A DNA stretch of 64,000 bases from Guillardia theta CCMP2712. Lineage: Eukaryota; Protista; Cryptophyta. Of this stretch, positions 10,330-52,267 are shown one piece after another. Position numbers and translations under genes: made by a program. The stretch is from the NCBI RefSeq assembly GCF_000315625.1, contig NW_005434654.1, positions 314,273 to 378,272 on the forward strand, in the 5' to 3' direction. Within the stretch, counting starts at the first letter, position 1, and each line of letters opens with the position of its first letter. Below the pieces are notes generated by a model. It saw only the letters and a program-made list of their open reading frames with translations. It was not told the origin of the DNA and did not search any database.

Positions 10330-10391
10330 CCATGTACGATGCGCACAAGCACAAGGTTGGCAAGGGTCACAAGGAGCTAAAGATAATTTGA
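10330..10391 (+). pseudogene. Orphan duplicate of the DGAT2 terminal exon (TMYDAHKHKVGKGHKELKII*)
   Basis: Identical to ~4403-4464, but the upstream DGAT2 exons are absent. Confidence 0.8.
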
Positions 10392-13900: not shown

Positions 13901-15155
13901 AAAGGAGGAAGCGGACCAGGACCTGCAGGTAGAGAAGGCATGGAGGAGGTTGAGACCTGCTGACACGGCCAAAAGCTCTACATGGAAGAGCTAGAGAAGA
14001 ACGCAAGCGACTGGATCGAGAACGAGTTCACTGACCCGAGAGAAAGGTCGGCGGTGGAGGAAGAGATCCGAGCGATGGAGTGAGTATGCAGGAGAGGATG
14101 GGGGAGAGCGCTAATGGAGATCGCCAGGAAGAAGATCAAGGAGATCGAGAAGGGAACAGACTCGCACGTGATCGAGATGGAGTACACGCGGCTGGTGATC
14201 ATCGTATCTCACACATTAGAGGCAGTACCAGTGATCTTGATGATCTGCAGGAGTCCGAGAGGAAACGACGAGAGCGGCTGTTCCAAGAGATCTCCGAGCT
14301 GTCGCACGTAAGGACTTGCTTGTTGATTGTTGACCATCAACATATCGACATCGTCATGACCATGGTCGTCTGCAGAAACTAGTATACAGCCAGAAAATGA
14401 GACAGAAGCACTTCACGAAGAAACGATTACTGTATGGGGAAATGACCTCCAAGACGTTTGCTCGCTTGGTGACACAGAGAGGCTTCAAAGGAGAATGTCG
14501 CTTCGATCACAAGGAGAAGGAGATGACGGTGTGAGACCCTACACAGACATCTCATCTCTTTTCCTTGTGCTGAGCTGCTTGCTTCTTATCCTCTTTGTTC
14601 CTTGCATGGTGATGTTCTTGTTATCTTCTGACCTGCTCTCCTTCGCTGGGCTCTCGATTTCTCGTCCTAGTCCAATGCAGCCCCCTGACGTCATCTTACA
14701 GCCCGTGGTGAGGACAGAGTCTCGAGAAGAGGAAGCAGAAGAGACGGATGCAGTGGAGATTCGCAACCTGTCCGGAGGAGAACGCTCCTTCTCGACCATC
14801 TGCCTGGTAGAGGAGGGAGGCAGGGTGCCGTAGCTGACTCCAATCAGGTACTATGTCTCAACCAGGTGGACTGTGCACCCATCCTAGCAGTAGACGAGTG
14901 GGATGTCTTCATGGATGAGCGGAATCGTCGGCTCTCCCTGGACATCATTCTCAAGGTTCTCTCTCTCTTTCTTCTGCGAGCTGCTGCAGGATCAGCCGGC
15001 ATGTCTGGTCGCTGAACATGCGGCAGGTGTTGGGTCATCGCCCTCTGTCGCAGGCGATCATCATCTCTCCTCACTCCGTCGACGCTGTGGCTGACGGGCC
15101 GAAAGTGAAGAAGATCACGATGAGGCCTATCGACCGCCTTCAGCGACGGATCTGA
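10956..15155 (+). CDS. SMC6: Structural maintenance of chromosomes protein 6, copy 2
   Basis: Same motifs and introns as copy 1; no disabling change seen. Confidence 0.93.
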
Positions 15156-16028
15156 ATCGTTGAGGGCTACAGTGACGTTACAGGCTGCCGTCCTCTCGGC
15201 GGCTACCGTCTCACTGAGTCGCTCACATCGACTGGAGTTGACTTGCTGCGGCCATGCTGACCCTCCAGCTGATTCAGTCCATTTGAAACTTGTGAATCAA
15301 AACATTCAAAGTGTTACCATCGGATCGCTCGGTGACGTCCTGGACGGTCACCGTGATGGTATTCGACGGCTCTCCTGGTTGTCTTCATACTGATTTTTAA
15401 CTTAACTTTGAGTAAATTCATGTATCTAATAGCTGCCATTCACACTCTCAGGAGCGGCTAATGACGGTCAACCGGGGCCCTTGCAGGGGCGCGCACTGGG
15501 GGTGTGGCCCGGGCGCACTGAGACGGTGATGGTGGCCCGGCCCGCGGCGCAGAGGCCCTGCAGGGGCACCTGCAGGGGGCCGGGCCGCCCGGCTGTGCAG
15601 GGTTGGCCCGCGGGGTCGCCGGTGTGGGGACGAGGGCTCTCTGTCAACGGATGTACAGTTGGGCTATGGGAATGGAAGCAGGGTTGGGGAGAGGAGACGG
15701 AGGAGGAGGAGGTGGTGGTGGTGGAGAATGAACAACAGCTGCAGAGGCATGGAAGTGAATGCAGTAAGGAGGGGAGTGGATAGGTGGGCAGGAAGCTAAG
15801 GAGTGAGAGGAGACGTTTGAGTTGTTCCCTTGGGCCGTGACTGTCGTTAGGCTCCTGTGTGACGATGGGAGTTTGCAGATGAACGAACCTACAAGCAGGT
15901 GCTGAAACGTGCTGGAACTGACTGAGTTGATTCTCCAACGTTGAGGTAGTAGAGCTCATCCTAGGTGATATCTTGAGAACCTCTCCTTCTTAGAGTGACT
16001 GCGGTCTGAAGAGAAGAGCCGTTGAGAA

Positions 16029-20578: not shown

Positions 20579-21994
20579 ATGAACCTTAATCCAAGTGTAG
20601 ACCTCTTGTTTCAGGATAGTGACATTCAGTTCAATTTCGATAACTGCAAGAAACCAAAGGCTCTCATGCCTCCATCGCAAGGTCGCAGAGCAAGGCCTAA
20701 GCGGCTGGCAAGACACGCCACGGAGGCGGACCGAGAAAAGGAGAGGCTGGGAAAGATCGCTGAGAGGGAGCGAACGAGGGTGCTGCTGGAGAAGCTCGAC
20801 CCGCTGGTGCCGCTGACCAAACAACCTGCGCCGTCCTCGAGGGGGAGCCTGCGAACGAAGCGAACGCTGATCGACCTGTATGAGGATGCGATAGCGCACC
20901 TTCAGAGCATACGATGTGAGGACATGAAGAAGCCCTCCAAGCGGATGAGGGATGGAGCATGTCACTTGTCGCTGACAGTGTATCGGGAGGGGTTGATGAT
21001 GAGCGACACGATGCTGTGCTTGGAGCTGCTGCTGCCAGACACGCGGGTCGTGCGGGCCAGCAGAGGGCTGGAGCAGCTGTACCTCGGGCTGAGTGGAGGC
21101 AGTATGGCACAAGAGAAGTTTGCGCACTTCTTTCATCCCGAGGACCTTCAGCATGCGAGGGCTCACCTGCAAGCGACCGGGATGCTGCCGTTGCAGTTTG
21201 TTGCGCGAGTGATCGCGATTGATGCAAGCCGGCAAGGAAGCATGCTGAATGTGAGGTTTGACGCAGCGTATCCGAATGCGATAGAGGGCAGGATGGTCTA
21301 CATGCTGAGCTTGCTGTCGAGCCCCTCGTGGACGTGCTCGGCGAGCTGGGACGGCTTGTCGGAAGTGTCAGGCGTGTACGAGCTGGTGAGCGACAGGTCC
21401 ACATCGCACTACCTGACGGACTGCGCGCTGAACCGGGTGGGAGCTGTGGGAGGCTTTCACTTGGGGCTGAACGCGTTTGGGAGCTGCGAGATGTCGAGCT
21501 CAGCGATCAGTCGGCTGATGAGTCGGATAGGAGCGACCTACAGCATTCTCAGTCAGAAGGGAAGCAGATTGCTCGAGCGCCTCTCTCAGGTTCATTTTGT
21601 GGTTGACTTCAGGCCAGAGATCCCGGTCATCTGCATTCACGTGCGGCTGAGGCTGCCAAACGTGTTCGGGACTTTCAAGACGCCTTGGTCAAAGGTGCTC
21701 ACGGCAACGTGCGATGGATCGCCGATCGAAGGCATTGTAAGGATCCCCGGATCAGCTGTTGGCTTCTTCAACCACAGAAACGTTCCTGGTCAGCTCTCGG
21801 TGCTCTACTACAAGCGAGACGGAGACGCCTGGCGGATCTTTCACCACCGCCTTTATAACTTCAGCCCTGATCTGGTCAGCCTGAGAGGCGAAGTCTTCAC
21901 CTCCCTCGGAGAAGATCCTTTCCCTTACTCCCTTCACTTCCGCAAGGTCGAGGAGGCCGACCGCACCATCTTAGCTGCTACAGAGCTTTCGTGA
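20579..21994 (+). CDS. bHLH-PAS-type transcription factor with C-terminal beta-rich (lipocalin/FABP-like?) domain, copy 1
   Basis: 471-aa uninterrupted ORF. Basic/helix1 AERERTRVLLEKLDPLVP; helix2 IDLYEDAIAHLQSI; PAS-like VVRASRGLEQLY...FFHPEDLQH. Confidence 0.75.
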   Translation: MNLNPSVDLLFQDSDIQFNFDNCKKPKALMPPSQGRRARPKRLARHATEADREKERLGKIAERERTRVLLEKLDPLVPLTKQPAPSSRGSLRTKRTLIDLYEDAIAHLQSIRCEDMKKPSKRMRDGACHLSLTVYREGLMMSDTMLCLELLLPDTRVVRASRGLEQLYLGLSGGSMAQEKFAHFFHPEDLQHARAHLQATGMLPLQFVARVIAIDASRQGSMLNVRFDAAYPNAIEGRMVYMLSLLSSPSWTCSASWDGLSEVSGVYELVSDRSTSHYLTDCALNRVGAVGGFHLGLNAFGSCEMSSSAISRLMSRIGATYSILSQKGSRLLERLSQVHFVVDFRPEIPVICIHVRLRLPNVFGTFKTPWSKVLTATCDGSPIEGIVRIPGSAVGFFNHRNVPGQLSVLYYKRDGDAWRIFHHRLYNFSPDLVSLRGEVFTSLGEDPFPYSLHFRKVEEADRTILAATELS

Positions 21995-22139
21995 TGGCTG
22001 ACTGGCGAGGAAGAGGGGGAGAGAAGGGAGTTTTGCTGGAAGGGTCAGGCGGGGAGTCAGAGCAGGTGGAGGGATGGGATGCGACGATCGAGGAGGTGTT
22101 ATCACCTTGAGGGTGTACAGAAGCTGTGTCATATGTGCT
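20579..22139 (+). repeat. 1.56-kb direct repeat, left copy (bHLH-PAS gene)
   Basis: Matches 40051-41611 at a constant offset of 19472. Confidence 0.95.
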
Positions 22140-22436
22140 CTTGCTGGTTTTTGCTTTGAAGCACTTCTATCTTAACATCTGCAATTCACTCTCGTTTGTA
22201 TAGATTGATTTTTTTGCGATATTTTTGACATGTCGCCCGTGGTCAATGAGAGGGCGACGTGATGGATTTTGATCTGAGCTGACGCGCTGCCTGTCTGCCA
22301 AGTAGTTGACGATTTGGACCGTTTTGCAATACTCTTGAATGAATTCTACTGCGCGAGAAACAAATCACCTGATGTCAAGGCCGGACGCGTCACAAGCTGA
22401 GCTTGCAGCTCTTTGGCAAGAGCTCCTTGCACGTCG

Positions 22437-25400
22437 TCACCTCTCCCATTCTGCCTCGCTGATCCCAAACTCCTGCATCAAATTTCCCCACGTTTCCGTT
22501 TCTCTCAGCTTTCGGATGAGTTCCTTGTCTTCGACAGACTTGAGATAGTCCACCAGGCGAGCTCGAGCTGCTCGATGTTTTGACTTGTCGAAGTCTTCCC
22601 TGTCTCTTGCAGTCACTTCACAGCTCCTCTAGTCAAGACCTCACCGGGACGCGAAGTACATGTCACTTCCCAGCTTGAGCCTGCAGGTGCTCACGTGCTG
22701 ATGTGCATCTTGTCCGCAGTCAGCGAAGCACCTGCCGTAACGGTCGACGGGAGCAAGAGACGCAACAAGTTCACCATGCGCAGAAGCCGCACGCGCACCT
22801 GCTGCATGTGACAGCAAAGCATCCATCGAAGTCGTGGAAGGCGACGTGACATCTCGGACATCTGCAAAGAAACGAGTCACATTTCAGACGTGCCAGCGAC
22901 CAAGACACTCCTGGTGACCAGCAGCTCTTCGATGGTTTTCTCAGCTTCCCGCACCTTCTCCTCCAGCTTCTTTATCCTCTTCAAACTCTCAATTTCTGCC
23001 TCCAATCGAGCTTGCATTTGCGTTTCCAGTTCCATCGTCAGATTCTGCTCTGCTACCTTGAGAATTGTTTTGAGATGCATGTCGAACAACTGTCTCGGGA
23101 GGATCTGAGCGAGGTTCGCTTCATCAAGGGGATGTGGGCAGCGGAAATGCGGGCACTTGATATGCCCTCCTCTTGCAACGATGATTCGCATCTCCTCCCT
23201 GACCTGACCTTCCACGTAAGATGCCAAGCAATGCTGGCACGTGAAATGATCTTCCATGCACAGGATCCCGTCCTCAGTCCTGCAAGTCCCTCTGCACTTC
23301 TCACTCCCCATGATGCAGCAATCTCGCACTTTTGCTCGGGGGTCGAAGTTGAATATCTCCGCGAAGAACAAATCTCTCTTGATCATGGACGCCTTCACGC
23401 GCTTCGTCGGGTCTCTCACCATGAGGCTGGAGATGAAGTTGTTGACCGTTGAGTCTGCTGCTCCTTCTTTAAAGCAACTCGCTCTCACCACATCATACGC
23501 TACTGTCGCACCGAACGACCAGACGTCTGTCGCATACGTACAGCCCGTCTGCATCAGCTCAGGGGCTTCGAAGCCAACAGTCATGGCGACAGAGCGCATC
23601 TCAGTGTCATACAGGCTTCTGGTCCTCTGACTGAGATCGACTGAGATATCGTAGTCTACTAGACGACCTCGAAAGTCGCTGCCTATGAGAATATTGGCCG
23701 GCTTGACATCCCCATGGACGACAAGATTCTCGTGCAGAAAGCTCAGCGCCTCTGATACCTCGTAAAGAACTTTCCTCACTTCGTACCATCGAGGCAACGA
23801 CTCCTGGACCCACTCGTCGAGTTGTCCATGGGCATAGAAAGGCATCTGGATGCAGAAAGACTCCTTCTCCACGTCCTCGAAGATCGCGACAATCTCGACC
23901 ACAGCTGGATGCTTGAGCCGACAGAGCAGCGCTGCTTCCCGCATGCATCTCTTCAAGGTTTTGATGTGATCGGGAAGATGAAACATCTTGACAGCAAACC
24001 ACTCCGACTCTTTCTTGCACTTCCACACAGTATGAGTCGCGTTTGTCTTCAACCGCGTATGCTCGTCGAAGTAGCAGGAAATGTCTCTGGTTGGAGACCA
24101 CAGGGGCAACAGGTCTGGGTGCAAGAGGAAATGCACTTCCTGCATCACCTCCGGGTAGTTGGACGCCACGATGGCCAGACCTTTTGTCTTGTCCCACACG
24201 TGATCGATAGACCTCTGGTATTCTTTCTTGGTGACTTCAAGCTTCCTCCTTGCTTCGGAGACGTCGCCTCCCCTGACATGCGACTTGTCACAAGGGCAAA
24301 GAGCTGCAAACAAGGTTGATCATACCTGTTTCGAGCCTTCTTCTCTTCGATCTTGATCTCCTCTACCCGGATTTTGCTGTCCTCGCACATTTGCTTAGCG
24401 TCACTGAGTTCTTTCAACGCCTTTTCTTTTTCCTTCCACAGCCTTCCGCTTGAGTCCACACACTCAACTTCATTGACATGCTCGCGGTATACCTCTATGA
24501 AGATCTCGCTTGCGGTCTCCAGCAGAGCAAGATCTTCGTCAAGAGCGTCTACTATTCGTTCTGCGACAGACATGATTGCATGGAACGGGAAATGCTGCAG
24601 GTGGTTGACTCTCTGCAGTCTTCTCTCTTCTTCCAAAGCCATGCCGTAAGCGTGTGCAGCCTCAAGAAAGTTTGAAGTCTTGATTGAAGACTTGTGAGAG
24701 TCTCTCACACCCAAAAGAAAGTCTTGAGCCCGGTCAAGCATCTCCCTGCTGGCTTCCTCGGTCTCACTGCCAACATTCGAGAGGCGAGAAATCTCCTCGT
24801 ACCATCTTGCCACGAGGTCATTGATCTGCTCGATATCCTGCGCTAGTGAGAGCTTTCTGCATGTCGTGACCTCGCTCTGTCTGGCTGACCTCATAGAGCC
24901 TTGTAGCTTCTCTCCTGCTTTGATCCCTGCCATGCTCGCTCTTGCTCCCTTGACCCCCTCGCTGATGCTGTCCCTTGTCGCTCGAAGATGTCGGACGAGC
25001 GTCTCTAGCTCGGACGCTCCTTGTGACATGTCTCTTCTGCTGTCGTCTGCCTTCACCGTCTTCAGCACGCTCATCATCTTCTGGCGCATCGCCCTGCAGT
25101 AGTCTGACCTGTGCAGGTCCCTGTTGCTCATGATCTGCTTCAGATCCCTGCTTTGATCCAGGACAGCTTTCCGTATCTGAGTTTGAGCCTCTTGCAGCTT
25201 TGCCTTCATGTCAGATACAGTAGACATCAAGTCGTCCATCGAGCTCTCGATCTCTGCCCTCTCCTTCCCCTCCAACACTGTCACCCCCTCGCGGGTCTGT
25301 AGCAGCTCCGAGCAAGTAAACAGCAGCTCCCTGCAGCTGCTTGTCTTGGCCATGAGCCCTTGCTCCGAGAAGAGGCTCCTTCGACCCTCGAGGTCTTGGT

Positions 25401-26244
25401 GATACTTCAAGACGCGCATGACAGAGCATGACAGAGTCTTCAAGTGCCGAAGAGGAGAGCTGTCTTCCCTGAGGAAATACTCTGGCGAGAACCGCACGTC
25501 GGGTTCGCTGGACTGGAGAGCTCGCCATAAGAGGTCATCGTCGGCTTGCAGCTGCTCGTCGGCAAACATGAGAGCTTTGCCATTTTCCTCCACCGCCATG
25601 CGAACAAACGGCATGTCCTTTCGTAAGGTGCTGTCAGCATACCTGAGGCACATCCCGTTCTCCGCTACCGCAGCTCGGATCAGGTCCACATCTCGTCTGT
25701 GTGCTTCTGAGACCTTGCCGATCAAAGACCCTCGTCTTTGAAGTATGCTCAGTATAGTCTGCTTGTCGTCCCAGGGCGACTTGCCGTTCCCCTCCTTGAC
25801 TGTCTTCCACACTTGCGATAGCTCCAACCATCTCATCAACATCCTTTTCGATCTCATCTGCTGTGCCTTTTCGATCATCGCAAGCTGCTTTGCGCTTCTG
25901 TCTCTGTACTGCTCTCTCAGCCTCTCGAACATCTGTGCTTGCAATTCTTCTCTCCTCTCGCGCATCTTGTTCAGCAGGCTATCAACTCCGCTCTTGACGC
26001 TCTGAAAAGTACCTGTGTCTCCCCCATGATCGGGGTGGTTTCTCCTCGCCCACTCTCGGAAGCGTCGCTGTAAGGTCTGATCGGTGAGTAGGATGTCGAT
26101 CTTGTCGCGGCTGAGCTCGTTCAGCGCCTCCATGGACTCGAGCCCCACCTCTCCTCCTCCGATGGCTCGCAGCGCTGCCTCCTCCATGTCGAAAGATTCC
26201 ACTAGCTCACTACCCCTCCTGGTGAGGCTGGATTCTGGGGTCAT
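22437..26244 (-). CDS. J-like(HPD)-DUF4116-coiled coil-protein kinase-RING1-Rcat (RBR-like E3) fusion protein
   Basis: HPDHGG at ~26020-26037; DUF4116-type repeats (AVAENGMCLRYADSTLRKD; AVEENGKALMFADEQLQAD); kinase AVK/REAALL/HGDVKPANIL/DYD/APE/DVWSFG; RING C..C.EDHFTCQHC...CPHFRC; CPRC..FHDFDGCFAVTC..C.CGFCAWC...H.HVSTC. An intron at ~24273-24326 joins ORFs 24145-26244 and 22877-24313 in frame. Confidence 0.82.
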
Positions 26245-26806
26245 CGACCGCCAATCCTCAGGTGGGAAACTTGCATGAGTCGAGTGATCGGCCGGGAACT
26301 GACCCGGCAGGGCCCGGGGCCCGACCGCCCCAGGCAGTGGTGTAGTAGTAGGGGTGCATCACCCTTGGAACGAAAGAGGTGGGGGTGGTCTGGTGGGAAA
26401 TCCAAGAGGCCCTGATACTCTACATCAGGTGGGTAGCGAGTGGGATCTTGGAGGGTAGGGGTATTGCTCCATGCGGAAGAGACGAGGACATGGCAGAGAG
26501 GCGAGCGCACGATGTTGGAGTGAGCGGAGGGCTGTGAGAGACACGTGGGATGATGGTAGAGAGTGAGGACACAGACGTACAGCCACATCACCATCACCGT
26601 CCCTGGTGGTGGAGCAGACACGAGCGGGCATGTAAGATCGGAGGGTCACATGGGAACATTGCATACAACACCTAACATGAAGCTGCCTGTACCTTAGTGA
26701 CTTGTTTCCTGCAGGACGATCGCCCGGCAAAGACCAGCGAGCCCGCACATCATCGACCAGGCCTCCTGCCGCTCCCTTCATACACACCCACTCACCCCGC
26801 TCACAC

Positions 26807-29319
26807 ATGGCTGAGGACCTAGAAGCTGCAGTCCGACTCCTTGTACCTACCCTGGGATACAGCGGGTGTCTGGAGGACATCTCTAACTCGTCCCTCATCG
26901 CTCTCAGAGACGAGCTAGACCGGCTGCCTGGGCTGCTTCCCAGGCTCTACAGGACATGGTCTCTCAAGGCTCATCCACAACAAGGAGGAGACGAGGAGAC
27001 GTTCAAGCGAGTGACGGAGGCGAAGGACAACCTCCCGAGGCTGTTGTCGAGGAGGATCGAGGAGATGGAGGGACAGAAGCATGCCGAGACCCAGCGGAGG
27101 ATGGCTGAGCGGATACGGGAGAGGAGGCGAGCACAGGCGGTGGAGCAAGGGGAGGCGAGGGCGAGGGAGCATGGGAAGCGAGCGGTAGGGGAGGCGTTGC
27201 AGCATTGGATGGGGGCGACGAGGGTAGAGAGGAGGGTGTACAAGAAGGCGTGCGAGGCAGGGCGGAGGGCAATGATGCGATGGATGAAGATAGTGTACAG
27301 GCCATCCCAGCAGGAGCGACAATGCACAGCACCGGTTTACTCAGGAGTTGGTAAAGAGACCCAGCGGAGGATGGCTGAGCGGATACGGGAGAGGAGGCGA
27401 GTACAGGCGGCTGAGCAAGGGGAGGCGAGGGCGAGGGAGCATGGGAAGCGAGCGGTAGGGGAGGCGTTGCAGCATTGGATGGGGGCGACGAGGGTAGAGA
27501 GGAGGGTGTACAAGAAGGCGTGCGAGGCAGGGCGGAGGGCAATGATGCAATGGGTGAGAATGCTGCACAGGCCATCCCAGCAGGAGCGACAAAGTACAGC
27601 ACTGGTTGAAAGAGACGCTGGTACCAGTGAGGTGAAGAGTGCACAGGCCTGCGGTCAAGAGATGTCACGTGGGAGCTCATTCCGCAAGGAGGCAGAGAGG
27701 AGCAAGGCAGCACAGATACCTCAAGCTGGAGCTCGATGTGAGACCATGGAGCAGCTTCAGCACTTGAGGAGGGAGGCAGCGCTAGAGCGACCTAAGACAG
27801 CTCCAAATAGAAGTCAGTCTCGACCATCCCAAGCCGCTTCTCGAGAGCCGTACAGGCCCCGTAGAAACAGACAAGGCTCAGACAAGCAGTCATCGTCTGA
27901 GCTTCGCCGAATAATTTCCTTCTTGAACAATCTGATAACTGGTATGGCTTCAAAGAAGCAAGAGAACGCGTCTGAGAAAGATCTGGAGGACTTGATAGTC
28001 CCAGCTCTTCAAAGTTTGTTACACGGTACTGCAGCAGACAGCAAGCAACAGGATGTGCGAGATCTGCTGTCAAACCTTGGTGATCACATTCAATTTATGG
28101 AGGACAAAGACAAACGAACCACTGTGTGTCTTCGACACACCTACGGGCTCCTTTACAACTTCGTTCACTCCCTGCCCTCCCCTCACGCTCTCCCTCCTCC
28201 CTCGGCTGATGTCAATGCCAACGATGACCATCACAGGCTCCCTCGCGTAATGTCATATCGTCCCAAGTCGAGGCAGGTGCATCAGATCAAGGCAGCGCTT
28301 GTCAACCTGTCCAGCTCCGCCGCTCTAGAGCCGGATACCCTGCAAGAGCTCGACCGTGCAGGGTCAGAGTGGGTCCGCGTGCTGGACGAGCTGACACGCA
28401 GCTGCGAGCTGCTTCGGCCGGAAGGAGCCAACGCGCGTGGCCGAGAGCAGGTGAGAGGGGCAGAGAGCGAGGGAGGCAGGGAGGGCGAAAGAGAATGCAG
28501 ACAGGGCAGGAATGAGGAGGGGAGGGTCTGTTTCTTGCCTGAGTCTGCGGCAGGGGCAGGGCGATCAGCTTCTTGATCTTGACGCGAGGTGCATGCAATG
28601 GAACGATGCTTACGCGAGCATGCGGGAGATGGAGGACGAGAGCTGCGTACGCGTGCACATGGAGGGCATGATCGGCCTTGTCAGGAGGATAAGCGAGAAA
28701 GGCGTGAAGGCTCGCGTACAGGAGGAGGCGAGAAGGCATGAGGCGCGAGCGATGGAGCTGGTGAAGGATGTCAAGGGATGGCTGGAGACCATCCAGGGCG
28801 ACATCATCGAGGTATGCAGAGGGGGCAGGAGGAGGCGGATCTAGCTTGACGGCGTGCTGGCTGATGACGACGCAGGATGGAGATGGCAAGGAGGCGAAGG
28901 GTGCGGGAGGCTGGGACGATCAGCCGGCGGGGGGTGTAGGGGAGGGGCGGGGGGAGGAGGATGTCGGGGGCTGGAGGAGAAGGCTGTCAGAGCTGCTGGC
29001 TGACCGGGAGGGAAAGCGCCTTGCGAGGGACAGGCAGGAGGAGGCCGCGGCAACGGAAGGAGAGGAGGCTGATAAGGCGCTGATGGTCAGGCTGATCAAC
29101 TTCAGCTGCGACTGGATCGCGAGGGTGCGGGATCGTGTTGTAGAGGAGCGGACATTACTCGAGTCAAGACTGCGGGAGGTGGAGGATGCATTGATGGGCT
29201 TGGAGGAGACGAGGAGGGGAGACGCTGGTGAGGAGGCGAGGATCGAGAAGCTACGGAGGAGAGCGGAAGAGATGAGGAGAAAGATGGGTTTGGTAGGCAA
29301 GGACACATCAGGTATATAA
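26807..29319 (+). CDS. J-like domain coiled-coil protein A (HPQ variant, internal 90-aa duplication), 3 exons
   Basis: YRTWSLKAHPQQGGDEETFKRVTEAKDNL; GT-AG introns starting at ~28451 and ~28812. Confidence 0.75.
27086..27625 (+). repeat. 270-bp in-frame tandem duplication inside gene A
   Basis: GAGACCCAGCGGAGGATGG starts at both 27086 and 27356; gene B has a single copy. Confidence 0.92.
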
Positions 29320-29445
29320 GAACGGAGTCGTGAATACGCTGGTAATTCGAGTGTCTGCGTACATTGCATAGATGCAACTCCTTCTCATCTGATGACAAAT
29401 TCGAAGATATCTGCTGTTCATAAGGGGAATCATGCATTTGATATA

Positions 29446-30537
29446 CTATTTTAGGACAGCTTTCCGTATCTGAGTTTGAGCCTCTTGCAGCTTTGCCTTC
29501 ATGTCAGATACAGTAGACATCAAGTCGTCCATCGAGCTCTCGATCTCTGCCCTCTCCTTCCCCTCCAACACTGTCACCCCCTCGCGGGTCTGTAGCAGCT
29601 CCGAGCAAGTAAACAGCAGCTCCCTGCAGCTGCTTGTCTTGGCCATGAGCCCTTGCTCCGAGAAGAGGCTCCTTCGACCCTCGAGGTCTTGGTGATACTT
29701 CAAGACGCGCATGACAGAGCATGACAGAGTCTTCAAGTGCCGAAGAGGAGAGCTGTCTTCCCTGAGGAAATACTCTGGCGAGAACCGCACGTCGGGTTCG
29801 CTGGACTGGAGAGCTCGCCATAAGAGGTCATCGTCGGCTTGCAGCTGCTCGTCCGCAAACATGAGAGCTTTGCCATTTTCCTCCACCGCCATGCGGACAA
29901 ACGACATGTCCTTTCGTAAGGTGCTGTCAGCATACCTGAGGCACATCCCGTTCTCCGCTACCGCAGCTCGGATCAGGTCCACATCTCGCCTGTGTGCTTC
30001 TGAGACCTTACCGATCAAAGACCCTCGTCTTTGAAGTATGCTCAGTATAGTCTGCTTGTCGTCCCAGGGCGACTTGTCGTTCCCCTCCTTGACTGTCTTC
30101 CACACTTGCGATAGCTCCAACCATCTCATCAACATCCTTTTCGATCTCATCTGCTGTGCCTTCTCGATCATCGCAAGCTGCTTTGCGCTTCTGTCTCTGT
30201 ACTGCTCTCTCAGCCTCTCGAACATCTGTGCTTGCAATTCTTCGCTCCTCTCGCGCATCTTGTTCAGCAGGCTATCAACTCCGCTCTTGACGCTCTGAAA
30301 AGTACCTGTGTCTCCCCCATGATCGGGATGGTTTCTCCTCGCCCACTCTCGGAAGCGTCGCTGTAAGGTCTGATCGGTGAGTAGGATGTCGATCTTGTCG
30401 CGGCTGAGCTCGTTCAGCGCCTCCATGGACTCGAGCCTCACCTCTCCTCCTCCGATAGCTCGCAGCGCTGCCTCCTCCATGTCGAAGGATTCCACTAGCT
30501 CACTACCCCTCCTGGTGAGGCTGGACTCTGGGGTCAT
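29446..30537 (-). CDS. Truncated copy of the J-DUF4116-kinase-RBR gene (J-like + DUF4116 only; possible pseudogene)
   Basis: 363-aa ORF nearly identical to the N-terminus of ORF 24145-26244. It ends at the duplication breakpoint (~29453) with a new stop. Confidence 0.75.
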   Translation of the reverse strand: MTPESSLTRRGSELVESFDMEEAALRAIGGGEVRLESMEALNELSRDKIDILLTDQTLQRRFREWARRNHPDHGGDTGTFQSVKSGVDSLLNKMRERSEELQAQMFERLREQYRDRSAKQLAMIEKAQQMRSKRMLMRWLELSQVWKTVKEGNDKSPWDDKQTILSILQRRGSLIGKVSEAHRRDVDLIRAAVAENGMCLRYADSTLRKDMSFVRMAVEENGKALMFADEQLQADDDLLWRALQSSEPDVRFSPEYFLREDSSPLRHLKTLSCSVMRVLKYHQDLEGRRSLFSEQGLMAKTSSCRELLFTCSELLQTREGVTVLEGKERAEIESSMDDLMSTVSDMKAKLQEAQTQIRKAVLK

Positions 30538-33350
30538 CGACCGCCAATCCTCAGGTGGGAAACTTGCATGAGTCGAGTGATCGGCCGGGAACTGACCCGG
30601 CAGGGCCCGGGGCCCGACCGCCCCAGGCAGTGGTGTAGTAGTAGGGGTGCATCACCCTTGGAACGAAAGAGGTGGGGGTGGTCTGGTGGGAAATCCAAGA
30701 GGCCCTGATACTCTACATCAGGTGGGTAGCGAGTGGGATCTTGGAGGGTAGGGGTATTGCTCCATGCGGAAGAGACGAGGACATGGCAGAGAGGCGAGCG
30801 CAAGATGTTGGAGTGAGCGGAGGGCTGTGAGAGACACGTGGGATGATGGTAGAGAGTGAGGACACAGACGTACAGCCACATCACCATCACCGTCCCTGGT
30901 GGTGGAGCAGACACGAGCGGGCATGTAAGATCGGAGGGTCACATGGGAAATTGGAAGCACCAAACATGAAGCTGCCTGTACCTTAGTGACTTGTTTCCTG
31001 CAGGACGATCGCCCGGCAAAGACCAGCGAGCCCGCACATCATCGACCAGGCCTCCTGCCGCTCCCTTCATACGCACCCACTCACCCCGCTCACACATGGC
31101 TGAGGACCTAGAAGCTGCAGTCCGACTCCTTGTACCTACCCTGGGATACAGCGGGTGTCTGGAAGACTTCTCCAACGCTTCCCTCATCGCTCTCAGAGAC
31201 GAGCTAGACCGGCTGCCTGGGCTGCTTCCCAGGCTCTACAGGACATGGTCTCTCAAGGCTCATCCGGACAAGGGGGGAAACGAGGAGACGTTCAAGCGAG
31301 TGACGGAGGCGAAGGACAACCTCCCGAGGCTGCTGTCGAGGAGGATCGAGGAGATGGAGGGACAGAAGCATGCCGAGACCCAGCGGAGGATGGCTGAGCG
31401 GATACGGGAGAGGAGGCGAGTACAGGCGGTGGAGCAAGGGGAGGCGAAGGCGAGGGAGCATGGGAAGCGAGCGGTAGGGGAGGCGTTGCAGCATTGGATG
31501 GGGGCGACGAGGGTAGAGAGGAGGGTGTACAAGAAGGCGTGCGAGGCAGGGCGGAGGGCAATGATGCGATGGATGAGAATGCTGCATAGGCCATCCCAGC
31601 AGGAGCGACAATGCACAGCATTGGTTGAAAGAGACGCTGGTACCAGTGAGGTGAAGAGTGCACAGGCCTGCGGTCAAGAGATGTCACGTGGGAGCTCATT
31701 CCGCAAGGAGGCAGAGAGGAGCAAGGCAGCACAGATACCTCAAGCTGGAGCTCGATGTGAGACCATGGAGCAGCTTCAGCACTTGAGGAGGGAGGCAGCG
31801 CTAGAGCGACCTAAGACAGCTCCAGATAGAAGTCAGTCTCGACCATCCCAAGCCGCTTCTCGAGAGCCGTACAGGCCCCGTAGAAACAGACAAGGCTCAG
31901 ACAAGCAGTCATCGTCTTGGGCTCAAAACATATTTTCCTTCTTGAACAATCTGATAACTGGTATGGCTTCAAAGAAGCAAGAGAACGCGTCTGAGAAAGA
32001 TCTGGAGGACTTGATAGTCCCAGCTCTTCAAAGTTTGTTACACGGTACTGCAGCAGACGGCAAGCAACAGGATGTGCGAGATCTGCTGTCAAACCTTGGT
32101 GATCACGTTCAATTTATGGAGGACAAAGACAGTCGAACCACTTTGTGTCTACGACACACCTACGAGCTCCTTTACAACTTCGTTCACTCCCTGCCCTCCC
32201 CTCACGCTCTCCCTCCTCCCTCGGCTGATGTCAATGCCAACGATGACCATCACAGGCTCCCTCGCGTCATGTCGTATCGTCCCAAGTCGAGGCAGGTGCA
32301 TCAGATCAAGACAGCGCTTGTCAACCTGTCCAGCTCCGCCGCTCTAGAGCCGGATACCCTGCAAGAGCTCGACCGTGCGGGGTCAGAGTGGGTCCGCGTG
32401 CTGGACGAGCTGACAAGCAGCTGCGAGCTGCTTCGGCTGGAAGGACCCGACGCGCGCGGCCGAGAGCAGGTGAGAGGGGCGGAGAGCGAGGGAGGCAGGG
32501 AGGGCGAAAGAGAAAGCAAAGAAAGGGCAGGAATGAGGAGGGGAGGGTCTGTTTCTTGCCTGAGTCTGCGGCAGGGGCAGGGCGATCAGCTTCTTGATGT
32601 TGACGCGAGGTGCATGCAATGGGACGATGCTTACGCGAGCATGCGGGAGATGGAGGACGAGAGCTGCGTACGCGTGCACATGGAGGGCATGATCGGCCTT
32701 GTCAGGAGGATAAGCGAGAAAGGCGTGAAGGCTCGCGTACAGGAGGAGGCGAGAAGGCATGAGGCGCGAGCGATGGAGCTGGTGAAGGATGTCAAGGGAT
32801 GGCTGGAGACCATCCAGGGCGACATCATCGAGGTATGCAGAGGGGGCAGGAGGAGGCGGATCGAGCTTGACGGCGTGCTGGCTGATGACGACGCAGGATG
32901 GAGATCGCAAGGAGGCGAAGGGTGCGGGAGGCTGGGGGGATCAGCCGGCGGGGGATGTAGGGGAGGGGCGGGGGGAGGAGACTGTCGGACACTGGAGGAG
33001 GAGGCTGTCAGAGCTGCTGACTGACCGGGAGGGAAAGCGCCTTGCGAGGGACAGGCAGGAGGAGGCCGCGGCAACGGAAGGAGAGGAGGCTGAGCTGCTG
33101 GTGGTCAGGCTCATCAACTTCAGCTGCGACTGGATCGCGAGGGTGCGGGATCGTGTTGTAGAGGGGCGGACATTACTTGAGTCAAGACTGCGGGAGGTGG
33201 AGGATGCATTGATGGGCTTGGAGGAGACGAGGAGGGGAGACGCTGGGGAAGAGGCGAAGATCAAGAGACTACGGAGGAGAGCGGAAGAGATGAGGAGAAA
33301 GATGGGTTTGGTAGGCAAGGACACATCAGGTATGAGAACAGAGTCGTGAA
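29453..33350. repeat. Tandem duplication unit 2
   Basis: Matches ~25161-29331. Confidence 0.93.
31096..33349 (+). CDS. J-like domain coiled-coil protein B (intact HPDKGG), 3 exons
   Basis: YRTWSLKAHPDKGGNEETFKRVTEAKDNL at ~31237-31323; paralog of gene A. Confidence 0.78.
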
Positions 33351-33566
33351 CAAGCTGGTACGTCGGACTGTTCGGTAAATTTGCAAGAGGAAAATGCAAC
33401 TTGCTGTTATGGACTGTCTCAGTGCAAGCATTCCACACAACAATGTTTTTTTGTTGACGATTGTCATGGGCAATATACATTTGTGATACTCAAGATGATT
33501 TTACAATGAGACGATAAAGAGTAAGATCTATTCAATTTTACCGAACAGTCCGACGTACCAGCTTGT

Positions 33567-35712
33567 TCACGACTCCGTTCTCATACCTGATGTGTCCTTG
33601 CCTACCAAACCCATCNNNNNNNNNNNNNNNNNNNNNNNNNNNNNNNNNNNNNNNNNNNNNNNNNNNNNNNNNNNNNNNNNNNNNNNNNNNNNNNNNNNNN
33701 NNNNNNNNNNNNNNNCAGGCAAGAAACAGACCCTCCCCTCCTCATTCCTGCCCTTTCTTTGCTTTCTCTTTTCGCCCTCCCTGCCTCCCTCGCTCTCCGC
33801 CCCTCTCACCTGCTCTCGGCCGCGCGCGTCGGGTCCTTCCAGCCGAAGCAGCTCGCAGCTGCTTGTCAGCTCGTCCAGCACGCGGACCCACTCTGACCCC
33901 GCACGGTCGAGCTCTTGCAGGGTATCCGGCTCTAGCGCGTCGGAGCTGGACAGGTTGACAAGCGCTGTCTTGATCTGATGCACCTGCCTCGACTTGGGAC
34001 GATACGACATGACGCGAGGGAGCCTGTGATGGTCATCGTTGGCATTGACATCAGCCGAGGGAGGAGGGAGAGCGTGAAAGGGGGGCAGGGAGACAACGAA
34101 GTTGCAAAGAACCTCCAAGATTCTGTATTCACTAGTTTGCAGAAATGCCTGTCGTGCTGGGAATGTACACGATTTTTGCTTCAGCCTTCCATTGATTGCC
34201 TGACCCATGCTCTTGTCTTGCTCGGCCTTAGTCTTCAGCGCCTCAAGCTGCTCCTGCAGCGCCTTCTTGTCTGACTCAGCCTTGCTCGTGTCTTGCTCGG
34301 CCTTAGTCTTCAGCGCCTCAAGCTGCTCCTGCAGCGCCTTCTTGTCTGACTCAGCCTTGCTCGTGTCTTGCTCGGCCTTAGTCTTCAGCGCCTCAAGCTG
34401 CTCCTTGCAGCGCCTTCTTGTCTGACTCAGCCTTGCTCGTGTCTTGCTCGGCCTTAGTCTTCAGCGCCTCAAGCTGCTCTTGCAGCGCCTTTCTTGTCTG
34501 ACTCAGCCTTGCTCGTGTCTTGCTCGGCCTTAGTCTCAGCGCCTCAAGCTGCTCCTGCAGCGCCTTCTTGTCTGACTCAGCCTTGCTCGTGTCTTGCTCG
34601 GCCTTAGTCTTCAGCGCCTCAAGCTGCTCCTGCAGCGCCTTCTTGTCTGACTCAGCCTTGCTCGTGTCTTGCTCGGCCTTAGTCTTCAGCGCCTCAAGCT
34701 GCTCTTGCAGCGCCTTCTTGTCTGACTCAGCCTTGCTCGTGTCTTGCTCGGCCTTAGTCTTCAGCGCCTCAAGCTGCTCCTGCAGCGCCTTCTTGTCTGA
34801 CTCAGCCTTGCTCGTGTCTTGCTCGGCCTTAGTCTTCAGCGCCTCAAGCTGCTCCTGCAGCGCCTTCTTGTCTGACTCAGCCTTGCTCGTGTCTTGCTCG
34901 GCCTTAGTCTTCAGCGCCTCAAGCTGCTCCTGCAGCGCCTTCTTGTCTGACTCAGCCTTGCTCGTGTCTTGCTCGGCCTTAGTCTTCAGCGCCTCAAGCT
35001 GCTCCTGCAGCGCCTTCTTGTCTGACTCAGCCTTGCTCGTGTCTTGCTCGGCCTTAGTCTTCAGCGCCTCAAGCTGCTCCTGCAGCGCCTTCTTGTCTGA
35101 CTCAGCCTTGCTCGTGTCTTGCTCGGCCTCAACCCATTTTATTTCAAGCTCTTGTGTGATCATCTTCTTTGCTTCAACCAGCTCGTTGCTTTTGATAATG
35201 AGTCTCCTTATTTTGCACTGATAAGCTATCGATCTAAGAGCAAGAAGCATTTTTCTCCCCATCTCGCACGCCTTCTTGTACACCCTCCTCTCTACCCTCG
35301 TCGCCCCCATCCAATGCTGCAACGCCTCCCCTACCGCTCGCTTCCCATGCTCCCTCGCCCTCGCCTCTCCTTGCTCCGCCGCCTGTGCTCGCCCCCTCTC
35401 CCGTATCCGCTCAGCCATCCTCCGCTGGGTCTCGGCATGCTTCTGTCCCTCCATCTCCTCGATCCTCCTCGACAACAGCCTCGGGAGGTTGTCTTTCGCC
35501 TCCGTCACTCGCTTGAACGTCTCCTCGTCTCCCCCCTTGTCCGGATGAGCCTTGAGAGACCATGTCCTGTAGAGCCTGGGAAGCAGCCCAGACAGCCGGC
35601 CTAGCTCGTCTCTGAGAGCGATGACTGAAGCGTTAGAGATGTCCTCCAGACACCCGCTGTATCCCAGGGTAGGTGCAAGGAGTCGGACTGCAGCTTGTAG
35701 ATCGTCAGCCAT
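33567..35712 (-). CDS. J-like domain protein C (HPDKGG) with 25-aa tandem-repeat coiled coil; spans an assembly gap
   Basis: Shares N- and C-termini with A/B. Single-base indels at ~34405, ~34491 and ~34536 in the repeat give a net frameshift, which may be a sequencing error or pseudogenisation. Confidence 0.65.
33616..33715. other. Assembly gap (100 N)
   Basis: Run of N. Confidence 1.
34214..35130 (-). repeat. Coding minisatellite: ~12 x 75 bp (AEQDTSKAESDKKALQEQLEALKTK)
   Basis: The unit recurs every 75 bp (e.g. 34561, 34636, 34711) and copies are almost identical. Confidence 0.95.
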
Positions 35713-36266
35713 GTGTGAGCGGGGTGAGTGGGTGTGTATGAAGGGAGCGGCAGGAGGTGTGCGGTCTCGCTGGTCTACGCGCAGAAACGTATCAGCCGAT
35801 CATGATTCCTTGAACATCAGTGGTCAGGTTCTTGAAGAGCCTGATCAAGTCTGTCAGTCTTCAAGTCATCATCAGACATCCATCCTTGTCTTTCTTCTTG
35901 CTTGTGTCCCTCCAGGCTCTCCCTCCTCTCTCCACCCCCTCTCCGCCATCTCGTTTACGCACCGGGTTCAAGCCCCCGCCCTCCCCGCCCCCCAGCGCAG
36001 CAGCTAGTGCAGGGTCTTGTGGGGGTGAAAAAAAGCGCACAGCTACATACCACCCACCCCCCCTCCCAGAATCGTGTTTTTCATTTTTCTCAGCAAACAC
36101 AAGTACCCCTACCCACATTTCAACAATCGAAGACCCCACCAAAGTGGTGGCAAGCGGACATTTTGTTTCCCAGCAACTACCCCTACCCCCAGTTCCCCCT
36201 TTCCCCCTTCACCCCATAACATCTACAACCCCCCCTTCTCCAACAGCCGATTCCCTTACAGCCGCC

Positions 36267-38635
36267 ATGTCGCTTGTGAGCGTACGTGAGGGATGCGTGA
36301 AGCTGTCGTCGCAGAAGCTCCCCTCTCAGCTGGAGCACCTCGGAGACTTGATCGCACATCTCCTGCAGAGCAAGGACTTTGCCGCCAGTCTCTCTTTATC
36401 ACACCGCAATCAGGTGGAACATCTCAACAATCTGCTGGCAGGTATTTCAAAGGGGTTGCTAGAACCTGTCAAGGCAAGCAAGTACTGCTCCGTGCTCATA
36501 GGAGGCAATCAAGTACGATCTAATGAGCTTGTCTCAACTATCTTCCCTGCTTCTGGCTCGATTCCCGTCTCGTTGGTGCCATCTTGTCTTATTGTAAGGG
36601 TCTATGTTCACGCTGTGGGTGATGACGATATCAAATATTTCAGTGTCTTCTCAACACGCGGAGCGAATATCACAAGTCTCAAGGAGTTGATAGCGAAGAG
36701 TTGCACATTCATTACAGACGCCCTCTCGTGTTCATCTCTCACCGCTGATCATCTGACGCTGGCTGACATACTTGGAAGAATAATGGAAGATGATGACGAG
36801 GTGGAAATGGTTCACGAGGATGTGGCAGACTGTGGATATCATGTCGCGTACATGTGCAGCCTAGAATTTCTAAACAATCTGGACAACGAGAAGGATCAAG
36901 GTAGTCCAGCGCTCCGATCCTGCTTGGAGATGATCAAGATTGCCGGCATGATCATGTCGAACACTCAGTCACCCGAGCCATCGCTTGGTGTGAGAGAACT
37001 TGATTTTGATCTCGTGAGCTGGAACACCTTCGTGCAACAACTCAATGCCGTACACCCTGCTCAGCCTGCTACGATCGATCTTCATGCTCTCCGAAATTGC
37101 TTGACTCAGTTTAAGACCACAAGGCATGACCTTTCCAAGTGCCCAGTTGAGATCAGCAGAGGCATCGAGTCTACCCTGGAGGGAATTGACTCACTCGATC
37201 CTGCTATGGTGACACATCTTGCCCTGGCTTTCAATACATTCTATCCTTATGTTCAGATCCTTGCACACAAGGATAAGCCCGTGTTTCGCTCGCAGAAAGA
37301 CGCATTGGTTCAGCTACAAGATCAACTGGAACTCTATCACAACCAAAGATCAGGATGTGCCCATGCGCGGATGTCAAAATTAGAACTTGAGACCTGTCAA
37401 GAGGTATGAAACAAAGTTCCTGCATTTTTCCAATGACAATGATTCTGTTTAGGACCTGAAAAACTTTCACAACATTTTCAACAAGACCCTCGACGACTGG
37501 GCAAGAGCTTATGATTGGAAATTGAAAAATGAATTTGACAACTTCGATCAAGACATTTCAAAACAAGTCGAGCAGCTCTCGAATATCTTGCAAGTCTACA
37601 AAGAGTGCACCAAGCAAGAGGAAAAGCGGAAATCGACTTTGAAGCAATATGAGCAAGAAGCGACGACAATTCATCAAAAAGCTCAGATCGTGGTAAAGTT
37701 TAACATCCTTGTCTGTGCAAAGGTATTTTTGACGTAGTTAATGGCAGGTCGACTGTTGTCTCAACCTGGATCGACTTGCCGAGGACAATTGCTCGGATGT
37801 TGACAAGAAAATCGACCAAGAGATTGCACGATTGCAGTCCCTCAAGAAGCAGAATCAAAACCTGATGCAAGAAATTCGGAGTCGCAAACAGCGCTTGATC
37901 AACGTCAAGACTCAAGAAAGCTTGATGCATCAGAATGTCATGATGTCAGTTCGCGAGTACCTGGCATGCGCAGACATTCGGATCAAGAAGGCTGAGAAGT
38001 CTGTCGAGGCAGTCTCTTCGGTGATCGAAATGATCCCTTCGCTTGCAAGCACAGTCAACGAAGAGGTCCAAGAGTTGAATGACTACGCAGAAGATCTCAA
38101 GCGTTGCATTGCTTGCGACTTGCATGAGGCTTATGCTGGAGTACACAAGGTCTCGACCATCGACAAGATCACTCAAACAGCAACAGCAGAGATATGCCTC
38201 GACCAAGAACATGACCTGGAAAGAAAGCTTGCATTGGAAGAGACTCTACTTGATTCGGAAGACTCAGTGATTCAGAATAAGATTCAATCAATCGAATCTG
38301 ATCTCAATCGTATGAAGGAGAGTCGACAGAAGTGCCTTTCAAAGATTACGAGCTTGAAAGAGAATCTTGAGACATCCAACGTCAGGTATGCCCCAGTGCT
38401 GGAGTTCTTGAGGACCAACTCTCAAAGTGTCACCCGTGACTTGCTCAAAATTGTGACCAACGAGGCGAACCTGAGAGAATGGCAAGGAGTGAGAAGAAAC
38501 GAGGCCTCCATGCGAGTACTGGAAATGGTCGATGACTTCGAGAATAACTTTCGGGAAGCCTTTGAAGGCAGAGATCGACGGATCCGCGAGAACTTGGCAC
38601 AAAAATATGCCGAACAAGGAAGAATCTCAATGTGA
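36267..38635 (+). CDS. Uncharacterised protein with possible ubiquitin-like domain and long C-terminal coiled coil, 3 exons
   Basis: GCCGCCATG start. GT-AG introns at ~37404-37452 and ~37693-37747 join ORFs 35820-37409, 37522-37737 and 37832-38635. Segment IVRVYVH...ITSLKELIAK...LTLADILGRIMEDDDEVEMV. Confidence 0.65.
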
Positions 38636-40050: not shown

Positions 40051-41466
40051 ATGAATCTTAATCCAAGTGTAGACCTCTTGTTTCAGGATAGTGACATTCA
40101 GTTCAATTTCGATAACTGCAAGAAACCAAAGGCTCTCATGCCTCCATCGCAAGGTCGCAGAGCAAGGCCTAAGCGGCTGGCAAGACACGCCACGGAGGCG
40201 GACCGAGAAAAGGAGAGACTGGGAAAGATCGCTGAGAGGGAGCGAACGAGGGTGCTGCTGGAGAAGCTCGACCCGCTGGTGCCGCTGACCAAACAACCTG
40301 CGCCGTCCTCGAGGGGGAGCCTGCGAACGAAGCGAACGCTGATCGACCTGTACGAGGATGCGATAGCGCACCTTCAGAGCATACGATGTGAGGACATGAA
40401 GAAGCCCTCCAAGCGGATGAGGGATGGAGCATGTCACTTGTCGCTGACAGTGTATCGGGAGGGGTTAATGATGAGCGACACGATGCTGTGCTTGGAGCTG
40501 CTGCTGCCAGACACGCGGGTCGTGCGGGCCAGCAGAGGGCTGGAGCAGCTGTACCTCGGGCTGACTCGAGCTAACATTGCGGGAGAGAAGTTTGCGCACT
40601 TCTTTCATCCCGAGGACCTTCAGCATGCGAGGGCTCACCTGCAAGCGACCGGGATGCTGCCGTTGCAGTTTGTTGCGCGAGTGATTGCGATTGATGCAAG
40701 CCGGCAAGGAAGCATGCTGAATGTGAGGTTTGACGCAGCGTATCCGAATGCGATAGAGGGCAGGATGGTCTACATGCTGAGCTTGCTGTCGAGCCCCTCG
40801 TGGACGTGCTCGGCGAGCTGGGACGGCTTGTCGGAAGTGTCAGGCGTGTACGAGCTGGTGAGCGACAGGTCCACATCGCACTACCTGACGGACTGCGCGC
40901 TGAACCGGGTGGGAGCTGTGGGAGGCTTTCACTTGGGGCTGAACGCGTTTGGGAGCTGCGAGATGTCGAGCTCAGCGATCAGTCGGCTGATGAGTCGGAT
41001 AGGAGCGACCTACAGCATTCTCAGTCGGAAAGCCAGTGGCCTACTAGAGCGCATTGCTCAGGTGCACTATGTCTTGGATCTTTCATCAGAGATCCCGGTC
41101 ATCTGCATTCACGTGCGGCTGAGGCTGCCAAACGTGTTCGGGACTTTCAAGACGCCTTGGTCGAAGGTGCTCACGGCAACGTGCGATGGATCGCCAGCCG
41201 ATGGACTGATGAGATTTCCTGGTACGGCGATGGGGTTTCTGGTCCATCGAAACGTTCCAGGTCAGCTCTCGGTGCTCTACTACAAGCGAGATGGAGACAC
41301 CTGGCGGATCTTTCACCATCGCCTTTACCGATTCAATTCGGACTCCGTGACTTTGAGCGGCGAAGTCTTCACCTACCTCGGAGAAGATCCTTTCCCTTAC
41401 TCCCTTCACTTCCGCAAGGTCGAGGAGGCCGACCGCACCATCTTAGCTGCTACAGAGCTTTCGTGA
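40051..41466 (+). CDS. bHLH-PAS-type transcription factor, copy 2
   Basis: Same length and motifs as copy 1, with patchy divergence. Confidence 0.75.
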   Translation: MNLNPSVDLLFQDSDIQFNFDNCKKPKALMPPSQGRRARPKRLARHATEADREKERLGKIAERERTRVLLEKLDPLVPLTKQPAPSSRGSLRTKRTLIDLYEDAIAHLQSIRCEDMKKPSKRMRDGACHLSLTVYREGLMMSDTMLCLELLLPDTRVVRASRGLEQLYLGLTRANIAGEKFAHFFHPEDLQHARAHLQATGMLPLQFVARVIAIDASRQGSMLNVRFDAAYPNAIEGRMVYMLSLLSSPSWTCSASWDGLSEVSGVYELVSDRSTSHYLTDCALNRVGAVGGFHLGLNAFGSCEMSSSAISRLMSRIGATYSILSRKASGLLERIAQVHYVLDLSSEIPVICIHVRLRLPNVFGTFKTPWSKVLTATCDGSPADGLMRFPGTAMGFLVHRNVPGQLSVLYYKRDGDTWRIFHHRLYRFNSDSVTLSGEVFTYLGEDPFPYSLHFRKVEEADRTILAATELS

Positions 41467-41611
41467 TGGCTGACGGGCGAGGAAGAGGGGGAGAGAAGGG
41501 AGTTTTGCTGGAAGGGTCAGGCGGGGAGTCAGAGCAGGTGGAGGGATGGGATGTGACGATCGAGGAGGTGTTATCACCTTGAGGGTGTACAGAAGCTGTG
41601 TCATATGTGCT
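40051..41611 (+). repeat. 1.56-kb direct repeat, right copy
   Basis: Matches 20579-22139. Confidence 0.95.
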
Positions 41612-41730
41612 ATTGGTCAAAGAGGTCAAAGAGAATGTGTACAGGTTAAGTTGTCAATTATTACAGAACTGTAACGATGAACCTTGTCAATCTCATCTTT
41701 GATCTTTGTGAAAAGAACAAGCGTGTACTT

Positions 41731-52229: not shown

Positions 52230-52267
<38 letters not shown>

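Follow-up and report, generated by a model that had tools for sequence, protein, structure and literature searches.

We analysed a 64,000-nucleotide window of the genome of the cryptophyte Guillardia theta CCMP2712 (assembly GCF_000315625.1, contig NW_005434654.1, positions 314,273 to 378,272 of the forward strand) and observed a cluster of J-protein genes at positions 22437-38635 of the window, to which all unlabelled coordinates refer. In the list of open reading frames (ORFs), five genes, here called A1, B1, A2, B2 and C, start at 26244 (-), 26807 (+), 30537 (-), 31096 (+) and 35712 (-), and all open with a common N-terminal module. The locus is made up of one old divergent pair (A1/B1), one fresh copy of it (A2/B2) and one inverted copy of B (C) beside an unrelated gene. 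We favour, with moderate confidence, the reading that the cluster is confined to the Guillardia/Hanusia lineage and was built by local segmental duplication of the one old pair. At a deeper level, the ~125-aa module would most probably have entered both genes of that pair through an inverted duplication, long ago, of the 5' end of a gene. In A it precedes DUF4116 repeats, a long coiled coil, a kinase and a ligase part with RBR-like RING1 and Rcat motifs; in B it precedes a poorly structured orphan tail. Recent tandem copying of the pair in G. theta would then have made B2 and a truncated A2, and inverted copying of B would have made C with its new repeat middle.

The shared N-terminal module

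A first-pass annotation of this stretch had proposed that the five genes begin with a homologous J-like module common to two otherwise different gene types. Alignment of the five modules bears this out. The first ~110 residues sort into an A type (A1 and A2, 98% identical) and a B type (B1, B2 and C, 90-94% identical), and identity between the two types is ~35%, 33 columns being invariant. By BLASTP, 77 residues of the A1 and B2 modules align with 36% identity (E 2e-11). Searching the entire 87-Mb G. theta assembly in six frames with either module returned this locus alone, with A and B as each other's sole relatives (E ~1e-5), and recovered none of the ordinary DnaJ genes of the genome at E 0.01. 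Since the two types are each other's only relatives genome-wide, the homology is real and specific. It does not stop at the J core but continues through a long helix up to an invariant Trp ~120 residues in. When the modules were placed in a tree alongside 60 further J domains, support was 97 for the A clade and 94 for the B clade, and a tree holding A and B together was 30 log-likelihood (lnL) units better than the free quick search (p-AU 0.83).

We observed the HPD signature of J domains in A1, A2, B2, C and all four sequences from Hanusia phi, and HPQ in B1. Among eight module sequences that are only 28-42% identical, the H, P and GG positions do not vary and seven sequences retain D, B1 being the exception. 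A profile of eight modules, four of them from Hanusia phi, matched ~40 solved J domains in the PDB, with Sis1 as the best (E 7e-5). Single-sequence searches of PDB chains returned J domains for the B module (E ~0.007) and, for the A module, a Euglena complex-I subunit (NDUEG6) aligned across the HPD(V)GG segment (E 0.006). An AlphaFold2 (AF2) model of the module has a pLDDT of 88 and places HPD in a loop between helix 39-51 and helix 59-110. The top structural rows for this model were J domains, namely Tim14 by Foldseek and a polyomavirus T antigen with Z 6.9, a root-mean-square deviation of 3.2 and 72 residues aligned. The A1 copy, with HPDHGG, lies at 25858-26187 (-) and is supported by BLASTP, alignment, the AF2 model and the profile search.

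Like the polyomavirus T antigens and Tim14/Pam18, the module has a core of helix II, HPD(K/H)GG and helix III. Unlike these HPDKGG-type J domains, it has a longer N-terminal part and a helix III that continues for ~50 more residues to the conserved Trp. We read the module as a divergent J domain, probably a working one, that is extended at its N-terminus and has a long helix at its C-terminal end. As the module is a J domain with HPD that is homologous in both gene types, a link to Hsp70 is plausible, and the conserved HPD makes recruitment of Hsp70 by the modules plausible as well.

Gene A1 and transcription of the locus

To define the structure of A1 (22437-26244, -), RNA contigs from three sequencing runs of different studies (Logan contigs) were placed on 22350-28349. 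The contigs skip four introns and omit the spacer at 26198-26761, and therefore derive from RNA. One contig of 3845 nt covers A1 from 22350 to 26144. The skipped stretches are short, of 45 nt (22600-22644), 43 nt (22732-22774), 49 nt (22862-22910) and 53 nt (24273-24325). On the minus strand three of the four introns have GT..AG ends; the 49-nt intron reads GA..AG, and none of the shifted cuts gives GT..AG. The five joined exons read through as a single frame that ends at 22437 and, counted from the ATG at 26244, encodes 1205 aa. The ATG at 26187 is the likelier start, giving 1186 aa, because the protein then opens with MEEAAL like its Hanusia homologue and the RNA contig ends at 26197. All searches with A1 were run exon by exon, and the joined spliced protein served for the frame check alone.

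The first-pass annotation had assigned a kinase and RING/Rcat modules to one partner. This holds for A1, which is spliced in the RNA of three studies as one transcript carrying the kinase and the RING/Rcat-like parts; A2 is truncated and has no kinase. From its N-terminus, A1 comprises the J module, two DUF4116 repeats, a coiled coil of ~400 aa and the kinase, after which a second coiled coil separates a RING1-like finger from an Rcat-like motif; Pfam recognizes DUF4116 and Pkinase. The kinase domain (23426-24031, -; Pfam Pkinase E 1.6e-32) contains AVK, HGDVKPAN, DYD in place of DFG, and APE. All four motifs are conserved in three homologous proteins described below, P0151 from Hanusia and P0152 and P0153 from environmental contigs. 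The glycine-rich loop is degenerate, with no GxGxxG. From the retained catalytic motifs we predict an atypical Ser/Thr kinase that is probably active.

Downstream of the kinase, a RING1-like zinc finger of RBR type (23126-23320, -) has the motif CC...C...HxxCxxC...CPHxxCP, which is kept in P0151, P0152 and P0153. The Rcat-like motif, CPRC-x9-GC-x4-C-x2-C-x3-FC-x2-C, lies at 22645-22861 (-) on two 87-nt exons that join in the spliced frame, and the same motif is kept uninterrupted in P0152. Between the two stands a coiled coil of ~60 residues in the place of an IBR domain, for which Pfam gave no match in this interval. Like the RBR E3 ligases RNF144A, RNF216, HHARI, parkin, HOIL-1 and HOIP, A has a RING1-like finger that ends in CPxxxC followed by a helix and an Rcat-like CPxC...GC...CxxC...FCxxC; unlike them, it has a coiled coil and no IBR between these parts. 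A model of the C-terminal part of P0152 is confident over RING1 and the helix alone, with a pLDDT below 60 for the Rcat-like part. When this model was searched with Foldseek, 14 of the 16 rows were RBR RING1 domains, all at E >= 1.8; neither it nor the module model gave a row at E <= 0.001. We call the C-terminal part of A1 RBR-like, without IBR, and regard it as a putative ubiquitin ligase.

Letters of the A2, B1, B2 and C types were likewise all observed in RNA. A contig from run X4 carries nine of nine A2-specific letters, and its match to A1 ends at 25160, which establishes A2 and its junction as real and as transcribed. Contigs of the B type (runs X1 and X2; window 26762-28087) are mosaics of the three paralogues. 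Their 5' part has all 17 C-specific letters together with C's own 5' untranslated region (UTR), in RNA of two studies; further on they have B2-type letters and, in run X2, B1-type letters too. It follows that the B types are expressed. A spliced leader was considered as the source of the loose 5' end and was ruled out, as the letters match genomic DNA upstream of C. A raw-read RNA run from 2026 contributed four reads only.

Duplication history and relatives

Next, we mapped the duplications by self-BLAST and repeat finding, which confirmed the recent tandem and inverted events that had been read from the sequence at first pass. In the tandem duplication, 25160-29344 corresponds to 29453-33360 with 96-98% identity, so that A2/B2 is a ~4.3-kb copy of A1/B1. 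A2 (29446-30537, -) retains the J domain, DUF4116 and the first part of the coiled coil. As it stops 7 nt beyond the breakpoint at 25160, it is a 363-aa fragment without the kinase. B1 (26807-29319, +) consists of the HPQ-bearing J module and an orphan tail, and it alone has a 270-bp internal duplication (27086-27607). B2 (31096-33349, +; intron predicted at 32833-32896) is letter for letter the NCBI protein XP_005835753 (GUITHDRAFT_105401) and has HPDKGG in its J module. Its orphan tail is poorly structured, with a pLDDT of 0.46 in the Atlas model and no usable match in Atlas.

C (33567-35712, -) is an inverted partial copy of B. Its matches to B2 pair 31020-31545 with 35776-35263 (94%) and 32164-32562 with 34115-33716 (97%). 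The J module (35263-35712) is followed by an array of 12.3 repeats of 75 bp, or 25 aa (34208-35129), which replaces the middle of B and includes frame disturbances, and then by a B-type tail (33716-34115). Together with the internal duplication of B1, this array accounts for the variable middle that had been noticed in this gene type. The last codons of C (33567-33615) lie beyond a gap of 100 N (33616-33715) within the gene. The left flank of the gap (33540-33615) is the reverse complement of the B2 3' end (33301-33380), and the right flank (33716-34115) that of B2 32164-32562. Since both flanks match B2, ~738 nt are expected where 100 N stand, and C as read across the gap is a gene whose frame continuity is not asserted.

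Three divergent pairs with spacers of ~555-560 bp had been proposed for the locus. The spacers are as described, at 562 nt from start to start for A1/B1 (26245-26806), 558 nt for A2/B2 (30538-31095) and 554 nt for C and its neighbour. The independence of the pairs is not upheld: the second is the tandem copy of the first, with spacers 98.4% alike, and recent duplication has thus inflated the count. In the third spacer, the match to the A/B spacer is limited to 76 nt by the ATG. The neighbour of C (36267-38635, +), earlier labelled a Ubl (ubiquitin-like)/coiled-coil gene, is a single-copy orphan outside the J-domain family. We found no Ubl, relatives or paralogues for it in Pfam, a PDB sequence search, Atlas or its own genome. 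With an unrelated spacer and a single-copy orphan without a detectable domain in the third position, the locus reduces to one old pair rather than three.

The copies differ by a synonymous divergence (dS) of 0.04-0.08. Ratios of nonsynonymous to synonymous divergence (dN/dS), based on small counts, are 0.12 for A1/A2, 0.35 for B1/B2 and 0.53 for B2/C. The copies are therefore recent and not free of constraint. These tandem and inverted events are examples of a process that can explain the shared 5' ends of A and B. The locus illustrates a mosaic origin of genes, as its duplications have yielded one copy that is truncated, one that has a new repeat middle and one that has lost HPD. Paralogue pairs of the COL4A1/COL4A2 type stand head to head on a bidirectional promoter and were duplicated as pairs (PMC12141075). 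A/B resembles them in its head-to-head paralogous sequences, short spacer and copying of the whole pair; unlike them, its paralogy is limited to the first ~125 aa.

A side observation concerns the surroundings of the cluster. A bHLH-PAS-like gene is present in two direct copies (20579-22143 and 40051-41615, 94% identical) that flank the whole J-domain locus, and the 19.5 kb between them may have been remodelled by the same duplication activity.

To find relatives, we ran an exhaustive hidden Markov model (HMM) search of 1.84 billion representative proteins, as the first-pass annotation had suggested for finding recurrent pairs. Specific full-module relatives were found in Hanusia phi alone, where A- and B-type genes are again neighbours. 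P0010 is an A-type protein of 632 aa with DUF4116, 31% identical to A1 exon 1, and P0002, P0003 and P0004 are of B type. P0151, which shares 53% identity with A1 exon 2, includes both the kinase and RING1. P0002 (B type), P0010 (A exon 1) and P0151 (A exon 2) are ORFs 2, 3 and 4 of Hanusia contig 767059. ORFs 3 and 4 continue into sequence where G. theta has introns, so the contig is unspliced or genomic. With A-type and B-type genes on one Hanusia contig, their adjacency predates the Guillardia/Hanusia split. Between the genera, the module is ~40% identical with HPD conserved; the B tails vary among copies, and those of Hanusia and G. theta are unrelated. As a calibrator of the divergence of the two genera we tried a Piezo ORF of the window, which had no Hanusia match in the length range searched; fast evolution of the cluster is thus not established.

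The body of A extends further than its head. Two intronless ORFs on environmental eukaryotic contigs are related to it: P0152 (L020:846-2420), 36% identical, with kinase, RING1, coiled coil and Rcat-like motif, and P0153 (L021:1277-3598), 30% identical, with the same architecture. The module HMM found nothing on these two short contigs or around eight kinase-PARP loci. As the metagenome contigs encode the A body, that body is older and more widespread than the J-domain head. The nearest kinase paralogues of A in G. theta are at least six long, intron-poor genes of 1000-1175 aa with a coiled coil, a kinase and a PARP catalytic domain (L012:4477-7821, L013:4697-8008, L015:4322-7669, L016:4278-7286, L018:4273-7698 and L019:4389-7913). 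A is like these in its 31-34% identity, which includes the pre-kinase helices, in its long intron-poor ORF and in the position of an enzyme after the kinase. They differ from A in lacking a J module and in that a PARP catalytic domain forms their C-terminal end, where A has the RBR-like part. By its predicted domains, A is the J-domain-headed member of an uncharacterised protist kinase-plus-effector family that combines one kinase module with either PARP or RBR-like enzymes.

Predicted roles and alternative explanations

J-domain proteins determine the site of Hsp70 action. If the modules work in this way, the J domains would bind cytosolic Hsp70 in its ATP-bound state and activate its ATPase. 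A would then place Hsp70, or the clients of Hsp70, next to its own kinase and ubiquitin-ligase parts, where triage or signalling would follow. The B-type proteins would offer the same Hsp70 entry point with other tails, and B1, with HPQ, has probably lost the docking activity. The architecture of A would then couple chaperone recruitment directly to two types of protein modification. In the literature searched, we found no paper on an N-terminal J domain, a kinase and an RBR-like ligase in one protein, or on this locus. Cyclin-G-associated kinase (GAK/auxilin-2) likewise has a Ser/Thr kinase and a J domain in one polypeptide, and its J domain recruits Hsc70. Unlike A, GAK has the J domain at its C-terminus, next to PTEN-like and clathrin-binding parts, and has no DUF4116, long coiled coil or ubiquitin-ligase part; no sequence relationship between GAK and A was found beyond the two domain types. 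CHIP/STUB1 binds the EEVD tail of Hsp70 via TPR repeats and uses a U-box. A would, like CHIP, tie Hsp70 to a ubiquitin ligase in one protein, but would do so with a J domain and an RBR-like part.

Several observations weigh against this reading of the cluster. For the J domain, Pfam DnaJ matches the B types weakly (E 0.002-0.09; 13-19 bits, below the curated cut-off of 27.8) and the A type not at all, and the structural Z scores of the J-domain rows are no higher than those of unrelated small helical proteins. For the C-terminal part of A1, Pfam recognizes neither RING nor IBR over the RING1/Rcat region, and the RBR assignment draws on cysteine motifs and weak Foldseek rows. The mosaic RNA contigs are not assignable to single B-type copies. 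In Hanusia, contig 767059 places A and B together, with orientation and spacer not readable. Finally, the Hsp70 and enzymatic roles are predictions from conserved motifs.

Part of this pattern would also be expected if the cluster were a neutral by-product of a duplication-prone region, with a decaying J domain, with A2, B1 and C as pseudogenes in the making and with a pair that has no joint function. The lost HPD of B1, the truncation of A2, the disturbed array and gap of C, and the B tails with no relatives and low model confidence fit such decay, as do the other recent duplications nearby (4370-15181 and the bHLH-PAS-like copies). However, the dN/dS of 0.12 for A1/A2, the transcription of A2 and of the C 5' end, the conservation of HPD and module between genera at ~40% identity and the intact A, spliced in three studies, all speak against it, and we regard neutrality as rather unlikely. 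That the copies are an assembly artefact, such as alleles or collapsed repeats set side by side next to a gap, is very improbable. An N gap at the centre of the palindrome and copies that are 94-100% identical would suit such an artefact, but an RNA contig of an independent study has the nine A2-specific letters and breaks off from A1 at 25160, C's own 5' UTR occurs in RNA of two studies, and a 270-bp indel separates B1 from B2.

The first-pass annotation had instead likened the genes to paired sensors and effectors of plant immunity, with a possible role in antiviral or stress defence. In such a system, the module would assemble B with A, or bring both to the same Hsp70, and the B tails would act as the sensing or decoy elements in a switch for stress or antiviral responses. 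Consistent with this are the head-to-head layout with a common module, which recurs as A/B adjacency in Hanusia, B tails that differ from copy to copy and from species to species next to a conserved module, a homology that passes the J core into the long helix, and a kinase family wired to PARP or RBR-like enzymes, domain types that are common in immunity. The A/B genes are like the plant NLR pairs RRS1/RPS4 and RGA4/RGA5 in being divergent genes with a common N-terminal domain type; unlike these, they have no NB-ARC, LRR, TIR or integrated decoy by Pfam. The sensor/helper logic found no support, as Pfam detected no sensor domain, be it NB-ARC, NACHT, LRR or another, in any of the genes at the locus. 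Nor did a virus or stress link: the scan for heat-shock elements found none in either spacer, and their count in the window equals chance. Moreover, there is one independent pair only, synteny in a sister genus is expected anyway, and the conserved HPD fits ordinary Hsp70 work over a pure docking domain. Contact between A and B through the module likewise found no support: a complex prediction that combined 156 aa of the A module with 170 aa of the B2 module gave a score of 0.00, which counts neither for nor against binding. We consider a paired adaptor/effector system unlikely on balance. Its more specific form, a conserved cryptophyte two-gene Hsp70-gated stress or antiviral switch in which a variable B adaptor and an A effector meet via the module, seems slightly less likely again; if true, it would be a protist analogue of homotypic-domain immune signalling pairs.

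Outside the J-domain locus, we observed further features of the window. A direct duplication of 4.9 kb (4370-9252 and 10297-15181) has 99.5% identity and represents a very recent segmental duplication. It carries ORFs of 390 and 361 aa, the second with a weak SMC-hinge match. Long ORFs at 47342-52204 contain a Piezo THU9/anchor domain (E 3.8e-54) and mark a gene for a Piezo-type mechanosensitive channel. At 52001-54000, the GC fraction drops to 0.37 from the 0.50-0.61 of other parts, and both strands carry overlapping ORFs of ~340-356 aa.

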